NCBI GenBank assembly: GCA_009103225.1
Contig: RHPI01000810.1
Location: 1-64,000 of the forward strand
Length of the DNA stretch: 64,000 nt
Direction: 5' to 3'
From: Chlorokybus atmophyticus
Lineage: Eukaryota > Plantae > Mesostigma and Chlorokybus algae
Shown: in pieces, positions 3,301-11,700 of the stretch
Position numbering within the stretch: the first letter of the stretch is position 1
Layout of the letters: every line of letters begins with the position of its first letter
The notes under the pieces: model-generated
Seen by the model: only the letters and a program-made list of their open reading frames with translations
The model's database searches: none
What the model was told of the DNA's origin: nothing
Made by a program: the position numbers and the translations under genes

Positions 3301-4506
3301 AGGGAAAACTACAGTGTCTTTAAAAAGGAGTGCTTGGCCATCGTGTGGGGTGTCTCAATGTGGAGAGTGTACTTACATGGCAACAAGTTCACTGTACTCA
3401 CAGACCATCACTCTTTGAAGTGGTTGATGACCACAAAGGATTTCACAAATCGGCTTGCCCGATGGGCTCTGAAATTGCAGCAATATGACTTTAACATTCA
3501 GTACCGTCCTAGTGAAAAGAATGGCAATGTGGATGCACTGAGCCGCATGCCTGTCTCAGACCGGAAAATACCGCCGCTGATGCCAGTGACAATGGTACTC
3601 ACCGTGGGGGCAGTTGAAGCTCAGGTGAGCTTCGGTCTCACAAGTGAGGAGCTCACTGATAGCTCAGACTCATACTCTCATCTGAGTGATGAAGTTGAGA
3701 AATTGTTCGCAACTCCAAGTGAGATAGCTTCAGAAGAAGCTCTGACACCCAAGGGAGAGTCATCTCCACCTCGCAAGAAATTGCGGTGCTCGTATTGCTA
3801 CATACGCAATCAGCATGAGACTAGAAATTGCCCACACCAGTCCACCATCAAGTTCAAAAGTTTGCTTGATGATGCACAAGTAATTGATTACCTCACAAGG
3901 GGGAAGGATGCATTAACTGAAAAGTCCCGAGGTATCAGAAGAAAGGTGATCAGCAGAGCCAAACGCTATTTTGGTAAATGAATAAGGTTTGTGGCTGAAG
4001 TCAACCTCTACAAATGAGAATGACAGATTGATCCCTCCACATTAGACCCGTGCTAAGTTCATTGCGGATGCGCATAATAATTTAGGCCATCATTCCGCCA
4101 CAGTGGTGTGCGAATGGCCAAGAAAGCGATGCTTTTGGTACAAAATGGAGGAGGCGGTCAAAAAGTATGTGAAAACATGCACAGAATGCCAAGCTAACGC
4201 TCTGAAAGTGCGTGAACCTGCACCACTCAAGCCAATCAAAGTGAGTGCAGTAGCATTTGAGAGAGTAAGCACTGACCTCATAGGGCCGATTGAGCCACCA
4301 ACCCTCCGTAGCAACACATACGTGATCACTATCATTGATCACCTGACCAAGTGGGCTGAGGCTCGAGCCTTGCCAAACAAAGAGGCAAGAAGTGTCTATC
4401 CCTTCATCATGGAGGACATTATAGCCCGACATGGCCTTCCCAAGATCTTGCAAAGTGATCAGGGAAAGGAGTTTATGCAACAGCAGATGCTCGACGAGTT
4501 GGACAT
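371..4506 (+). pseudogene. Degenerate Ty3/Gypsy gag-pol (gag, CCHC, protease, RT, RNase H, N-terminal half of integrase)
   Basis: Retrotrans_gag-like YLRDGAQEWF; knuckle CTYCDKLGHTVGGC; protease VDSGA; [29 protein letters not shown]; RNase H LLTDASDFALGAV; integrase HHCC and STDLIGP...SDQGKEF. Domain order PR-RT-RH-INT; several stops and frameshifts. Confidence 0.95.
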
Positions 4507-5031
4507 CATTAGGCGAGGTTTGACATTGACCGGTCCACTGGCTTGAAATGCCATCGAGCATGGTACGGTCTCAGGCCTGCTGCCGTGGCCCAATCGTTTG
4601 CGACTCAAGTGTCCACTGCTCGAGCCACTCGCAGAGCGCCACATCCGACTTCACAGCTGACGTGGAAGCGTTTGGTGTCTGACCCCAGTAAAGTTGGGCT
4701 CCCACCCCCACCTTTTGCAGTGGCGGCTTGAGCAAGCTGGCGGTGGCGGCGGCAGGGCCGCTGTGGACCAGGCCTGTTCACGGCGGCGGCGGCGGCGGTA
4801 GCGGCGTGGAAGGCGGCATGCTCATGTGTAAGTGTTGAGGCATTTGCCGTTCTTGCACGCTCAGGCACTTGCAACAACCGCGAAATGTTAGCCGCGCACG
4901 GATTGTCTTATGTGACGGCTTGAGCAGGCGGCGTGGACTCCACCCTCCACACCTTCACACTCCGCCTTCGGAAGGCGCAGTGTGAAGGTGTTGATGATGG
5001 TTATTAGAGCGTACGGCCAGCTGGCTGCAAG

Positions 5032-5586
5032 ATGGGCGAGGTACAAAGCCAGCTTGCCCTCGCCTACCGCCCAAGTAAGTCTGTCTGCGTGTGTGCCAAC
5101 GTGCTTGGATTGTGCATTGCACGCTGTGGCATGTGGGTACAGCTTATTTGTTGGCGTGCGTGCTTGATTATTATATGAGCATGCATTGTCACATGCAGGG
5201 CGTCCTCGCCTCCGCCCTGCAAGCTATCGATTCGGGGCATTGAGCTTGTCGGTGGGGAGTTGTTATGAGATCTCCCCCCCTCAAGTTGGTTTTTGGGCAG
5301 ACTTGGCAACGACAGAGCTGGAGCGGCGCAAGCCGTGGGTTGTGCAAGTGCTGGCGCTGCAGCCTAACAAGGGGCGTGCAAGTTTCTTGCGTGCGCGCTT
5401 CTTCGTGCTCCACCACCACCTTCAACTCCAACATACGCTGCAACTGCGTTTGCATGGTAAGCCATAAAGGATTAGGCAAGGAATCAGTATAGGGACTGTT
5501 ACTTGCACGCACTTTTGCCTCACATGTAGATGTGTTGGTGTATTTGTGTGTGTTTGCATGCGTGTTCGCGTGCTGGTGCAGCTATA

Positions 5587-5625
<39 letters not shown>

Positions 5626-6908
5626 CGCGCGCGCGCGCGCTTGAAGCTGCAGCTGATCATGTGTGCTGGTGCGGCATTGATGTGGCACTGCAATACTCTA
5701 GTAATGTATAGTTTTGTTAGTTAACGCTTGTGTGCAACCAGAGTTGTTTGAGGGATGTGAAGAAGAGGATTTAGATCCGCGGCTGATCAGCAAGCCATGC
5801 GTTGTCCTGCCCTGGCATATGTTTGCCATCAAGTATGCTCGGGCACAACCACCACCCGACAAGCCAGTATACTTCTACCAGTACAAGTAGGTGTATCAGT
5901 CATGAACACTGCCAGGTGTTAACCTTTGAGAGCATGATGGGCATGTGATGGCTTGCATATGTTGATATACAATGCGCTTTTGTACAGGTATTTTCTGCCG
6001 AACGAAGACAGCGAGTTCGGGCGCATCAAGCTCAGGAGGAATGTAGTCAAGTTCTGGCGAATGAGCTTCATGGAGTTGCCAGAGCTTGTCTTGGCTGGTT
6101 TTGATCAACTACTGATTGCTGCTGTGCAGTCCACCATGTCGGCAACAACGCACACAGCCAAGACTGCACGCCTCCATGGCATTCGTAAGTGTCATCATAT
6201 TCTGGTTGTTGTCATTGACAATGTTTGCATGTGTGCCGTACTGATACTCTTGTGCACATAGCGCATGAGTGGGTGGCCTCTCGATTGCGCCAGCTGCCGT
6301 GCAAACAATCCCCGAGATCCTTGTTGTTCCACCCTTTCGTGGATGATGATGAGTGTGCCGTTGCAGTGCAGCGGTTCCGGGATCCACTTGACGCCTTCAT
6401 GCCTGGGTGGGCTGAACGCTCTTTTCCTTTCGAGACTCGAGCAGTTATCGTGGTGCAAGAAGTAGTGATGCGCTACTTCTTCTTTCGTCAACTATTGTCA
6501 GGTTGGTAGTTATCGTATGGTATTGTGCTGTGCATGCATTGTGTTGATTCAAGTCGATGTTGTCTGCCCGCAGTTAGGTGTCCTTTCCACACTGCTAGTG
6601 TTGAAGGGGAAGGGGTGGAAGCCATTGTGAGCTGGCGATCCTTCTCGTCCACATTGCAAGGGAATGTCAGTACCTTCAGCATTGCATGCGGAGGTGATGT
6701 ATATGGCAGCATAGACTTGGTGGCACCTTGCTCTCTTAGTCAGCTTCTGGAGGCTATCACGGATGAGGGCTGGCATATGCCTAGCAGTTGGCGCTTTCGG
6801 ACTGCTCACGGAGTGGTGGACTTGGGCGAAGAGGAGAATGTGAATGCATTGCACCCGCACACGGAGGGGTGGGTGGTGCCACATGTCGTAGAAGTTATTG
6901 TTGTATAG
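5032..6908 (+). CDS. BAH-domain protein, 6 exons, 405 aa, apparently intact
   Basis: Exons 5032-5074, 5199-5456, 5742-5886, 5988-6184, 6262-6501, 6574-6908; all introns GT-AG and phase-compatible (1218 nt). BAH-like motifs: YRFGALSLSVGSCYEISPP, KPWVVQVLAL, FLRARFF, HELFEGCEEEDLDPRLISKPCVVL, VYFYQYKYFLPNEDSEF. Confidence 0.75.
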
Positions 6909-6997
6909 AGCAAATTGTGGATGTGTTTATATCCTGGTTTTGGTCTTATGCTTGACATGTGATGTGCATGCATGCGACATCTCTTCACAATAGGATG

Positions 6998-9900
6998 TTA
7001 GCCAGATTGATAAAATTCTGCAATATTTTTCCAATGCTCTTGAGGTGCTATGTCTGCGTCAAGTTCTAACTCATCTAGTTGCTGCATAGCTCGCTGCAAC
7101 TCTGTCAATTGTCCACCGACTACCCGCTTGCCTGTGGTTGTCCTAAAACCACGTTCAGTCCACTTGATAGAGCCATCGCCCTCGACCAAGCGCGCGCGCA
7201 TTGCAGCTAAGTATTCCTGTCGCATTCTATGGTGAATGCGACGCAACTCAAAGTGCAGGACTTGAGCAAGTGGGCAATCGTGTGCAGCTCCGCCACCATG
7301 GTTGGTATGCGCTTGCCACGCCGCCTTGAACCTCCAATGTGACTTCTCCATCGACTGTGTGCTCCAAATGGCCAAAGATCCTCCCGACGAATCGCTGCTG
7401 ATAAAATCGGCCGCGTGGCACCATAAGAGGTGCATGTGGTGAGTGACATGATGCGAACCCCAACAGCAAATAAAGCTCTCCATGAATTCGTTGATGCAAT
7501 CCTGTATGAAAGACACACCGCCAATTAAATAAAAACGCGAATGGCAATCAAAGGCGATGGCATGTACGCATGCGCACGCAAGGGCTATCAACTTACTTGA
7601 AACTCTCCTCTTCTTCGGTCACGGTCAATGCCGTGAAGTACATGGATAGCCGCTTTAATGCCAACCACACGTCACGCTTTTGCGCACGGCGGTTGAGATC
7701 AACATCCCCCTCGGCAGCCAGGATCGTGCGGTAGTTGTCACCTTTAAACACATAGCCCATTCGATTACATTTTCCCACATGCCGGTTGCAACTAGAAAGC
7801 TTACCAGATAGCAAAGCACGGCAAGTTGTATCTTTCAAGGAGATCTTGGCAGGGTAGTGGTCGCGTCCAGCTTTACCATCCGCTACAATCTTACAGTTGC
7901 CACCCTGGATGCCAAGGGCACTTAAGGCCTTCTCAAGCTTGGCAATGCGCGCGCGTGCAGCGTCATTTTCGCCACCATCAAATGTCCATGCATAGTTAAT
8001 TAACAACCACAACACCTGCACCAAAGCAACACAATTGGAATAGCGCAACACGCAACCGCGCTCACTCGCACGTCAGCTGCACATGCACTCGGTCGTCACC
8101 TTTTCGACTATGCGCATGTCCGCGTGCATTGTGCTTAAATGCATACGCTCCGGAGGCAGTGGGAACACCGTGCTGAAAAAGCTGTGCCGTGGGCCACAAG
8201 CATGTAAACCACGGTGCTCCTTTTGGCAATGTCCGTATAGACAAGGTTCTCGCGTTGTTGCACCGAGCGGACACCCCGCGCATACTTTCAACGTCTTCAA
8301 ATCGGCCGCAACATGACACTCGACCATATAAGATCCGCTAGATATCTGCCCAGCCAACCTCATGTTAAGCACATATCAGCGAGAGTAAACCATAACAAAG
8401 GCACAGTACTACAAGTAGTACTTGTAGCGGCTCATGGTCCTCGCAAGACACGTCATGGCGCAAGATGAAGGCGCGTATGCTTTCGGTGTTGGCCATGATA
8501 TCCACTTGATTCTCTTTGGCCACATGGAATGCCGCAAGCGGTAGCATGTCATACTCGGACATGACCTTGCCAAGACCGCCCTCCGCTGCAGTAAATGCAT
8601 AATTCATGATCCGGAAGCAAACTCGCTCAATCTTACGATCGTTATATTCGGTTGTCTCGTCCAGGTAAAAGCAAATCATCAGCTTGTCATTGTCACCTAC
8701 CATAGGTAAAGTAATTGTTGACAATCCACTCACGAAGCACTGCACAATGTCAAGGAGTTCCGTGTTCACCTAGCGGCAAGTTGTACAAGCGCAAGGCTAA
8801 GTCAATCATCCTAGTTATGTCCAGCTCCTTGCCGTTGTTGATGTTAGTGTCCGACATGGTAATGCAGTAAGTCAGGTCATTGATGTTCCTGCAATGTATC
8901 GCAATCAGCATGCATATCTGTTACCTCCAGCACCCGAATGTCACATGTGGCACAGAGCGTGTCATACCTGCGCTCGTTGGCCAACTGCCATGGGTTAATG
9001 CTAGCCCCGGTCGATGTTGTGCGTGTCCTCATACTCAAGCCTCGGATGCTTGCCTGCTGTTGAAGTAGCTTGTATAGTCCAACCCAAGTTTGCTCGCCGC
9101 GTGTGTTGTCAAGCACAGAGCAGATGTCCTCCACTCTCACCCCATTTAGCATGTTGTTCAGCCCATCGCTCTGTACTTACCAACACATGACTCAACCCGA
9201 AGCATTGCATCAGCAAAGGAAATTGTGTTGCCACACACCTGTAACGCCCGCACAACTGCGCTGTACTTCTCGTGGCCTAGGGCCACGCGCAACTCTTTTC
9301 CTTGCATGAGCTGCGCAAACGCAGCCCCAAACTCTTCCGCTCTTTCTGTGCTGGTCAGCTCCCTCCAGCGAGGGACGAGAAGATCCCTGCACTCGCGCAT
9401 ACAACACATAAGCAACAGGGTCAACAACACAACACCACGATACTACTGCATATGCTGTGCATGCAGGGGCGTTTACACTCACTTCACTTTCTGTGTCGTC
9501 CTTGCCTTGCCACTCTTGCGTAGCTCCATAAATTTAACAGCCGAGGGCCGAGCTGCAGCCTTCATGCGTGACAAAGCAAAGTTGACCCTTTTTACCTCTT
9601 CTAACCTGCTGGTCAACTTTTCTTCTGTAGCCCGCAATTGCGCCTGTAGCTTCTCTGCCCTTTCCTCTGCCACTGCTCGTGCTCGTGCAAGCGCCTCACT
9701 GCTTTCTTGCTGCAGACGTGCCGCAACCGCTTCGGCATCAGTTTTGGCCTTGGCAGCCTCAGCTTGCACGCGTGCAAGTTCTTGCTGCAGCCTCATGCTG
9801 TATGAGTGCATGTTTGCAGCATTCGCCTGCAAGGCTGCACATGCCATGACATGCTGACGCAATGTCTGCTCCCGCTCAGTTAAATGGTTATGCAAGCAAC

Positions 9901-10108
9901 CACCAGATATCCAACGCAAGAATGAGGTTGGGTTGGTAAAAGGCAAGGCCGGGCTGTAATTGCTACCTACAATCCAATGATTCCATCCTGCCTGCAACTC
10001 CGCCTCTACTCTATAATGTACTTCGAATTTCTGCTTCTTTTTCACCGGGCTTGGCCGCGGTGAGGTGATACCCAGTCGGGGAGCTATGGGAGTGAAGTTG
10101 AGCGCCAT
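6998..10108 (-). CDS. RAG1/Transib/CMC-like DDE transposase, about 9 exons, ~830 aa, one probable 1-nt frameshift
   Basis: Approximate exons 10108-9483, 9386-9239, 9170-8968, 8889-8770, 8702-8421, 8346-8098, 8017-7806, 7742-7597, 7501-6998. Motifs: NBD-like ARPSAVKFMELRKSGKARTTQKVKDLL; D1 CFYLDETT (8659-8661); LPLAAFHVAKEN; D2 VAADLKTL (8301-8303) followed by PCLYGHC; STMHADMRIVEKVLWLLI; VTHHMHLLWCH (HxxxxH, 7415-7432); GSLAIWSTQSMEKSH (E at 7346-7348). Confidence 0.8.
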
Positions 10109-11078
10109 AGCAGGCCCTGCAAAAGTGGTTGTGCCAGTTTGTGCAATGATTGCGTGCATGTGTGTGCACGCCAGCTGCATGGTTGAGAGTGCTAGTTGAC
10201 TGTGTAAGCAGGGACTGTGCGCGCGTGCTTGCACATGTGCATGCACGTCTAATGCAGTGACTGCGTGCGGGCATTGCTTGCATATGTGCATCTCACTGCA
10301 TGGTTGTGAACGCTCTGACTGCGTGCGTGCATTCACAAAAGCGGACGTAACTGGATGTGTGTGTGGGGCGTGACCATGACTCAGTGTATGCACAACACTG
10401 AGTAGGTGTTGTGCATACACTGACGGTGCGGGCAATGCTGGCGTGCATGCAGTGCCTGTGTACGGGCTTTTCTTGACTGACTACACATCACAACTTGTTT
10501 GTGATGTGTAGTCACTCAAGGAATACCCTGCCTGCCTGTGTACATAGCATGTGCAGAGTGCGTGCCTGTATGTCCGTGTGAGCCTGTCAATGTATCCAAG
10601 GTAACTTGCATGAGAGCTTACCTCCTGGTTGGACGGGCCTCAAGTCCTCCTTGCTACCCCAATGCACAGCACAACTGCTGTGCACAGTGCTCGGCTGGTC
10701 TTGACGCCAACACCTGCTGATGCCGCCGCCGCCGCCGCTTGCATGGAGGGTTTAGTGTGGTCTGTTGGGAGAGGTTTAGCTGCCTAGTTGGTGTCCTACC
10801 CCCTTTCTACTGGTATCCTACGCCTGCTCCAGTGTTCATGCATGACACCCCCACCTACCTACACTGGCAGCTGCTCCCCTGCCACTGCCCGCCATGCACA
10901 CAACCCATCACAATACGTTTTGGTGTCCGGGTCTCGGGTGGTCTGGTGACTGACCCCATTGTTTCATTTCAAACGAAGTTCGACCGGCAAGGCCGGAATT
11001 GCCTAATCGCGCGGCGGCCACGTGACCTCGATAGAGCGGCCTCACAATGGACCTTTTTGGGTCGAACCTCGCCTAATG

Positions 11079-11700
11079 AATGCAGATTGCACATTATAAA
11101 TCTGCTTCATACCACCCACAAACTAATGGGTTGGTTGAGAGATTAAATAAAACCATCAAATCTGCAATTGCCAAGTACGCACAGACGTACACATACAGGT
11201 GGGATGATATGTTCCCTCCTGCAATGTTGGGATATCGCGCGATGCGCCAGCGCAGCACGACATTCCCCCCTTTTCGCATGCTGTACAATTGTGAACCACG
11301 CCTCCCTATCGGTGCAATTGATGGGAACAATTTTTCAAGTCATGGACTTGGAAGATTTGGACGGAGAATGGTTCATTTGAAATGGACAGGCATTGCAAAA
11401 GTTGCATGAACATGCGGCAGAAAATATTGCTGAGCTCAGGCAAAGCAATCTGCTGAATTTATCTCGCAAAACTCCCATCAACCCTCGCAATGCGTCTTGG
11501 TTGAAAAGGAAGCTACGTGTGAAGTTACGCGTGCCCTCGCGCACAACTTGCTTAGCACCGAAAATGGCTTGTGAATTACGAGATCAAACGCATTTGCATC
11601 AAAGAAAGAACTCAAGTGGAAATCAGGCATCTGCACACCGGCACCTACAGAACGGTGCATGTCAACAGGCTTGCCCCTTATTTTGTGAGGGGTGAGGAAA
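11079..11700 (+). pseudogene. C-terminal half of Gypsy A integrase
   Basis: MQIAHYKSASYHPQTNGLVERLNKTIKSAI...AMLGYRAMRQRSTTFPPFRMLY continues the catalytic core broken at 4506. Confidence 0.92.

Follow-up and report, generated by a model that had tools for sequence, protein, structure and literature searches.

Element structure and insertion site

The analysed stretch of DNA (hereafter the window) covers positions 1 to 64,000 of contig RHPI01000810.1 from the alga Chlorokybus atmophyticus (assembly GCA_009103225.1). At positions 4507-11078 it contains a 6,572-bp element that interrupts a Gypsy integrase core and carries two genes, one for a transposase with a RAG1-type core (minus strand) and one for a partner protein designated ACC (plus strand). 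It likely represents a cut-and-paste transposon with two genes, now defective, from the CMCT clade and perhaps from its Lanisha lineage.

The strongest inverted repeat around the element has 35-nt arms at 4506-4540 and 11045-11079 with 77% complementarity, and the outermost 14-15 nt of both arms form a perfect inverted match. The left terminal inverted repeat (TIR) lies at 4507-4540 (plus strand), and its first letters, CATTAGGCGAGGTT, resemble CATGAGGCCGAG of a related element found in contigs L002 and L003. The right TIR is located at 11045-11078 (minus strand) according to inverted-repeat detection and 15-mer counts, the terminal 15-mer having just 2 sites in the 64-kb window, both at element ends (0.15 expected by chance). 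The termini read CATTAGG...CCTAATG, i.e. 5'-CA..TG-3'. No similarity between the two ends is detected past ~33 nt inward, and no subterminal repeat arrays are seen in the element.

As for the interrupted integrase, its left half gives matches to Integrase_H2C2 and to positions 6-83 of Pfam rve within the left flank, with RT_RNaseH upstream, and its right half in the right flank matches rve_3, the core running on through the YHPQTNG motif. Deletion of 4507-11081 (the element and one triplet) restores the integrase frame (..ELD-M-QIAHYKSASYHPQ..), whereas an assumed duplication of 2, 4, or 5 bp breaks it. The flanking pentamers, GACAT and AATGC, do not match as a 5-bp target-site duplication (TSD) would. 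Because only 3 bp restore the host frame and the pentamers differ, the TSD is probably 3 bp long with one mismatch, CAT at 4504-4506 on the left and AAT at 11079-11081 on the right, as judged from this single insertion. Perfect 2-bp duplications of AT or TA were rejected, since they would cut into the conserved CAT(T/G)AGGC terminus and break the integrase frame.

Gene structures and transcripts

Gene models were obtained from contigs of public sequencing runs matched to positions 4900-10600, and every intron of both genes is confirmed by RNA-derived contigs. Both genes are multi-exon and convergent, with stop codons at 6906-6908 (plus strand) and 6998-7000 (minus strand) and 89 nt between them. 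An original prediction for this locus had described a TIR-bounded element of 6.57 kb with two convergent spliced genes whose stops are ~90 bp apart, and both points are borne out by the measured length, the 34-35-nt inverted ends within the split integrase, and the RNA contigs.

ACC (4928-6970, plus strand) is represented by a 1,388-nt RNA contig with 0 mismatches (100% identity), which defines six exons (4928-5074, 5199-5456, 5742-5886, 5988-6184, 6262-6501, and 6574-6970) and five GT..AG introns. Its open reading frame (ORF) runs uninterrupted over 405 codons from the ATG at 5032 to the stop at 6906-6908. A spliced ACC transcript is present from a paralogous copy of the element too (run X1, record 1).

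The transposase gene is represented by a 2,273-nt polyadenylated contig with seven CT..AC introns (GT..AG on the minus strand). This contig comes from the paralogous copy, being 95-99% identical to the window and roughly 2% diverged. The coding sequence occupies 6998-10116 on the minus strand, from the ATG at 10108-10106 to the stop at 6998-7000, and comprises ~849 codons after lesion repair; its coding exons are located at 9483-10116, 9239-9386, 8968-9170, 8422-8888, 8100-8345, 7805-8015, 7597-7741, and 7001-7501. No in-frame ATG lies upstream of the start codon. A 505-nt intron (10117-10621) separates the coding sequence from a 5' non-coding exon at 10622-10715 (minus strand), which the loose end of another RNA contig (run X1, record 3) matches from 10624 onward. 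In the paralogue transcript the poly(A) tract begins at 7004, a point 4 nt upstream of the window-copy stop (7000-6998), and the paralogue mRNA would miss this stop unless the paralogue sequence differs there.

In comparison with the paralogue transcript, the window copy of the transposase carries three lesions on the minus strand: an in-frame TGA at 8750-8752 (TTA in the paralogue), one extra base at 8715 that shifts the frame, and a loss of 4 nt (CTCT) near 7603, at the end of exon 8 (7597-7606), that shifts it again. Restoring the three sites according to the paralogue gives an 849-codon ORF. The window-copy transposase is a pseudogene, and with one stop and two frameshifts the copy is therefore non-autonomous, mobile only with an enzyme provided in trans. 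The expressed paralogue is also broken (stop at codon 163), so that each copy has its own stop. Since the codon differences between the two comprise 33 nonsynonymous and 5 synonymous changes, both transposase copies look as if they have been decaying neutrally since insertion. The earlier impression that both genes are well preserved holds for ACC with its intact 405 codons, but not for the transposase.

Transposase relatives, catalytic core and predicted fold

Pfam searches with single ORFs and exons of the transposase report nothing but coiled-coil noise at the N-terminus, and neither phmmer with exon pieces against the PDB nor a word-indexed protein search with exon 9 returns a match. A HMMER search with exon 9 yields 55 relatives, mainly fragments, with best identities of 46-51%. 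A follow-up search adds longer relatives (585-741 residues) from assemblies of JGI, NCBI/ENA, and Logan, none of them named and none with a Pfam domain. A tblastn alignment of the window transposase with the locus of relative P0058 spans 576 residues, 27% of them identical (E 7e-57). No such transposase was found in a scan of viral contigs.

The family alignment contains the conserved blocks LDET, AADLK, (I)PL.RVHFCSMH.EMR.VE, and YMH.LY..G....G...W..Q.MEKSH. The predicted catalytic residues, all on the minus strand, are Asp 402 in LDET (8659-8661), based on family-wide conservation, Asp 496 in AADLK (8301-8303), based on the family alignment, and Glu 735 in MEKSH (7346-7348), based on the family and profile alignments. 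A C-x2-C motif (C503-x2-C506, 8271-8282) follows closely on the second Asp, and Glu 735 is preceded, ~23 residues earlier, by an H-x4-H motif (H707-x4-H712, 7415-7432). In the profile alignment the family Glu falls on the last Glu of the RAG1 SEGNE motif, which we take to be E962 of mouse RAG1. The haptophyte-type relatives (P0011, P0056, P0057, P0058, and P0001) have no C-x2-C after the second Asp (alignment A2, columns ~340-400), and the ZnC2-like site is thus not family-wide. The idea that the window transposase shares a conserved intron with the JAEIGA contigs was considered and dropped, the break there being at residue 706/707 and the window intron at 683/684.

Regarding sequence profiles, RAG1 and RAG1L account for 16 of the 21 PDB matches, all below the significance threshold (E 0.2-1.4). 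Pfam RAG1 (PF12940) is the commonest and the sole recurrent weak match, with E 0.003 and 16 bits (cut-off 25) in 3 of 37 family members. None of Transposase_21, DUF4218, and Transpos_assoc matches any of the 37 members at E <= 1.

The AlphaFold2 model of relative P0058 has a mean predicted local distance difference test score (pLDDT) of 76.7 and a predicted template modelling score (pTM) of 0.65. Foldseek against the PDB reports 49 matches at E <= 1e-3, all of them RAG1, amphioxus RAG1L, or Helicoverpa Transib (best 1.6e-10), and the core of the model superposes on RAG1 and Transib across ~440 residues. These matches cannot discriminate within the group, because no CACTA, Chapaev, or Lanisha structure has been solved. 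In the ESM Atlas the best matches are unnamed Rotifera, Mucoromycota, and Streptophyta clusters with template modelling (TM) scores of 0.54-0.57, followed by an arthropod RAG1_RNase_H cluster (0.53), streptophyte CACTA clusters with Transposase_21 and DUF4218 (0.52-0.53), and vertebrate RAG1 (0.48). The leads on the CACTA side are an Atlas feature lead of 0.86 and the structural similarity (TM 0.52). Describing the transposase as RAG1-like, as was done initially, overstates the case, as the core fold that it has in common with RAG1 and Transib is equally CACTA/EnSpm-like (TM 0.52-0.53 for the CACTA clusters versus 0.48-0.53 for Transib or RAG1 clusters).

Partner genes in related elements

Contigs L002 and L003 hold one 10.8-kb element at two different insertion sites. 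Its TIRs (44-46 nt) begin with CATGAGGCCGAG, a close match to CATTAGGCGAGG of the window element. The transposase starts at one end, and a 285-residue ORF reads inward from the other. Against 24,736 Pfam families this ORF matches BAH (PF01426) with E 0.0024 and 18.2 bits (cut-off 30.8), which is the sole Pfam match among the non-transposase ORFs of the L002 element. A homologue search with the ORF returns only itself and one 74% fragment. In L029, the transposase tail is 40% identical to that of the window, and a two-exon gene located downstream on the opposite strand is homologous to the L002 ORF (z 8.6, with 0 of 3,000 shuffles reaching the score).

In another set of relatives (L007, L008, L012, L016, and partly L015), the gene convergent with the transposase is a conserved ORF2 that reaches ~630 residues at most. 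No Pfam domain is found in ORF2 of L007, L008, L012, and L016, and the ORF2-family hidden Markov model (HMM) does not match ACC. TIR searches in L001, L007, L008, L012, and L016 gave nothing convincing. Judged by these comparisons, a convergent partner gene is a habit of the transposase family, while the identity of the partner varies between subgroups. Because the partner recurs in distant members, it is not a one-off capture, an outcome that the original prediction had named as fatal to its proposal; and since ORF2 is unrelated to ACC, partner genes are interchangeable within the family.

Two further features were observed in these contigs. Within the 10.8-kb element a module of two ORFs is duplicated (L002 3947-8295, minus strand), in which 5477-6109 corresponds to 7450-8295 (34% identity) and 3947-5098 to 6617-7297 (31% identity). 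In L014, an ORF just downstream of the transposase (3633-4436, plus strand) has a C-terminal core histone fold (Pfam Histone, E 3e-18); this ORF could belong to the flanking host DNA or be a further passenger related to chromatin.

Nature of the ACC protein

By eye, ACC residues 26-160 show the usual BAH pattern, which would place a putative BAH-like domain in exons 2-3 (5199-5886, plus strand). Within the H-E-L motif, the Glu codon is interrupted by a phase-1 intron, and the L029 partner has an intron in the same position and phase. A domain-restricted alignment of ACC with the L029 partner is collinear over 120 residues (z 3.8, p 0.004), although the sub-regions were chosen by hand, which weakens the p value. 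From such sequence patterns, a BAH fold in the N-terminal ~150 residues of ACC is slightly favoured. ACC is most likely a family-specific accessory protein and probably of the L002/L029 partner type.

Several results, however, weigh against a BAH-type partner in a mobile element of the kind outlined here. Searches with the ACC exons against Pfam, the PDB, and the Atlas are blank, assigning no fold to the protein, and an Atlas search with ACC exon 2 and the L002 partner returns no usable match. At full length, ACC has no significant similarity to the L002 or L029 partner; against the L002 ORF, pairwise BLAST, Smith-Waterman with shuffles, and hhalign are all non-significant, and a 3-sequence HMM gives E 0.095 against ACC. 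The BAH match of the L002 ORF is itself sub-threshold and absent in the 74%-identical homologue. The AlphaFold2 model of that ORF, built from a 3-row alignment, is unusable (pLDDT 34), and a four-sequence partner profile against the PDB reports only chance-level matches and no BAH entry. As for the insertion itself, the 3-bp TSD contains one mismatch and is based on one insertion only, and no TSD is visible in the L002/L003 flanks, where the metagenome contigs may be chimeric.

In the proposed mechanism, the family transposase is an ~850-residue RNase-H-fold DDE enzyme with a complete RAG1/Transib-type core (D402, D496, and E735). Analogy with Transib and RAG suggests that it would bind the ~34-bp inverted ends, cut the element out, and insert it again, in this case probably duplicating 3 bp. 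The element inserted into the Gypsy integrase, and its transposase has since gained the stop and the two frameshifts. The N-terminus of ACC may form a divergent BAH-like fold that links the element or the transposase to chromatin, and ACC may serve targeting, regulation, or silencing evasion. In its broadest form, this account describes a widespread, mostly unannotated RAG1-fold (CMCT) branch in algae, plants, and marine protists with a habitual convergent partner, which in one sub-branch, including the present element, would be a divergent BAH reader working with the transposase, an independent parallel to RAG1 and the PHD finger of RAG2. We propose this broadest form tentatively and regard it as rather unlikely.

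It is quite possible, if short of an even chance, that ACC is instead a lineage-specific accessory protein without a BAH fold, like TnpA of CACTA or a transposon ORF2, whose BAH-like pattern is coincidental; such a protein might bind subterminal DNA or act otherwise. The blank ACC exon searches fit this explanation, as do the sub-threshold status of the sole BAH match, which occurs in a distant element, and the unrelated convergent ORF2 without a Pfam domain in L007, L008, L012, and L016. Coincidence, however, would have to account for the fact that the single weak match among 24,736 Pfam families is to the family predicted beforehand and in an equivalently placed gene, that the L002 ORF is homologous to the L029 partner, and that ACC and L029 have in common both the phase-1 intron in H-E-L and the 120-residue collinear alignment.

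Placement among known transposons

The CMCT clade includes EnSpm/CACTA, Mirage, Chapaev, Transib, Plavaka, and ESTA as well as Lanisha (Kojima 2025, PMC12730594). Its members are characterized by the motifs C(2)C and H(3-4)H, by termini of the CA..TG kind, and by TSDs of 2-5 bp, and HHpred ties CMCT transposases to RAG1 (PMC12730594). The present element matches the clade in its DDE triad, in the C-x2-C and H-x4-H motifs that lie between its second Asp and its Glu, in its CA..TG termini, in a probable 3-bp TSD within the 2-5 bp range, and in the RAG1-type core fold of the P0058 model, while no Pfam family of a named member reaches threshold on this family. Placement at the level of the clade follows because predicted CACTA structures match as well as Transib/RAG1 and the TSD is likely 3 bp.

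In comparison with CACTA/EnSpm, which has TnpD as transposase and TnpA as second protein and is abundant in plants, the likeness consists of the probable 3-bp TSD, the CA-initial termini, and the two proteins. The element differs in its terminus (CATTA rather than CACTA), in having no CACTA Pfam match and no subterminal arrays seen, and in its convergent genes, the usual CACTA layout being co-oriented or alternatively spliced. To our knowledge, the RAG1-fold transposases on record from organisms other than animals are chiefly CACTA elements of plants and the little-described Lanisha lineage.

Lanisha is a proposed superfamily whose first report came from the moss Ceratodon purpureus (PMC8245031). 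Its Repbase entries carry the labels DrEr, RhIr, and StPi (names in the tree file), of which RhIr stands for Rhizophagus, a Mucoromycota fungus. From the abbreviations, DrEr and StPi are presumably plant cDNA and coral, and GenBank MT647524 is an example of a Lanisha entry. The likeness here is a CMCT lineage with a green-lineage host, the comparison being one of recorded hosts; these hosts overlap the best Atlas matches, i.e. the unnamed Mucoromycota, Streptophyta, and Rotifera clusters.

As for Transib and RAG1, sequence similarity to them is only sub-threshold, and CACTA models match equally well. The terminus CATTAGG is not like the recombination signal sequence heptamer (CAC(A/T)(A/G)TG, CACAGTG-like), and the TSD is probably one of 3 bp, not 5. 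Amphioxus-type ProtoRAG (RAG1L with RAG2L) shares the convergent layout, but its RAG2L partner is a kelch propeller with or without PHD, and no Pfam kelch or PHD match is found on the ACC exons.

True membership of the Transib/RAG lineage, with a layout homologous to that of ProtoRAG and a replaced partner gene, is therefore improbable in our estimation. The convergent layout, the best solved-structure matches to RAG1, HzTransib, and BbRAG1L across the whole core, and the weak Pfam and PDB sequence matches to RAG1 only are in its favour. The structural argument is non-discriminating, however, given a PDB without solved CACTA, Chapaev, or Lanisha, and in the Atlas predicted CACTA clusters match equally while unnamed clusters match best. 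The integrase frame, furthermore, is compatible with a TSD of 3 bp but not with one of 5 bp, the termini are not CACAGTG-like, and the partner has no detectable similarity to anything kelch-like. The ProtoRAG-like architecture that had been proposed for this locus is thus one of analogy and not of kinship, given the equal CACTA fold match and the likely 3-bp TSD. The element sits in an already described clade (PMC12730594): it is a new variant inside a known clade and not a relative of ProtoRAG.

Fungal DNA transposons, of CMCT and other types, carry TET/JBP dioxygenase genes that have been proposed to counter silencing (PMC12730594). They provide a precedent for epigenetic or chromatin cargo, although an enzyme is compared with a putative reader and the hosts belong to another kingdom. 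That ACC is a captured or neighbouring host gene, a passenger in one copy lineage with no service to the transposon, seems very doubtful: CMCT-clade transposons do passively acquire epigenetic genes of the TET/JBP kind (PMC12730594), and ACC relatives are undetected in most transposase-related contigs, but ACC begins just within one TIR, the stops of the two genes are 89 bp apart, the ORF of ACC is intact over five introns despite the decay of the transposase, ACC is present and spliced in the paralogue copy too, and distant elements hold equivalently placed partner genes.

The analysis describes a family whose transposase is expressed and spliced and whose convergent partner is constant, with relatives in metagenomic protists. 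If the partner is a chromatin reader, RAG1-type enzymes would have been paired with a histone-binding subunit on more than one occasion, and the family would offer a tractable non-animal system for studying the role of such a partner to the transposase. If it is not, what remains is an ordinary DNA transposon with two genes that decayed recently and is useful for repeat annotation of this genome.

Additional observations

A (GT)n(GC)n compound microsatellite is located at 5583-5642 within ACC intron 2 and belongs to repeat families D1 and D2. Short DNA contigs at least 99% identical to the element (4900-10600) are present in runs X3 and X4, which are labelled as organisms B and C, and the RNA runs are labelled as organism A; the B and C labels may represent the same species, co-cultures, or contamination. 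Runs X1, X2, and X3 also share an abundant contig (depth ~120 in X2) that is otherwise unrelated to the window, both of its flanks being unlike it. It joins 18 nt of the transposase sense strand (9702-9719), 1 base, and 20 nt of the partner sense strand (6649-6668), and such adjacent non-repetitive matches are unlikely to occur by chance.

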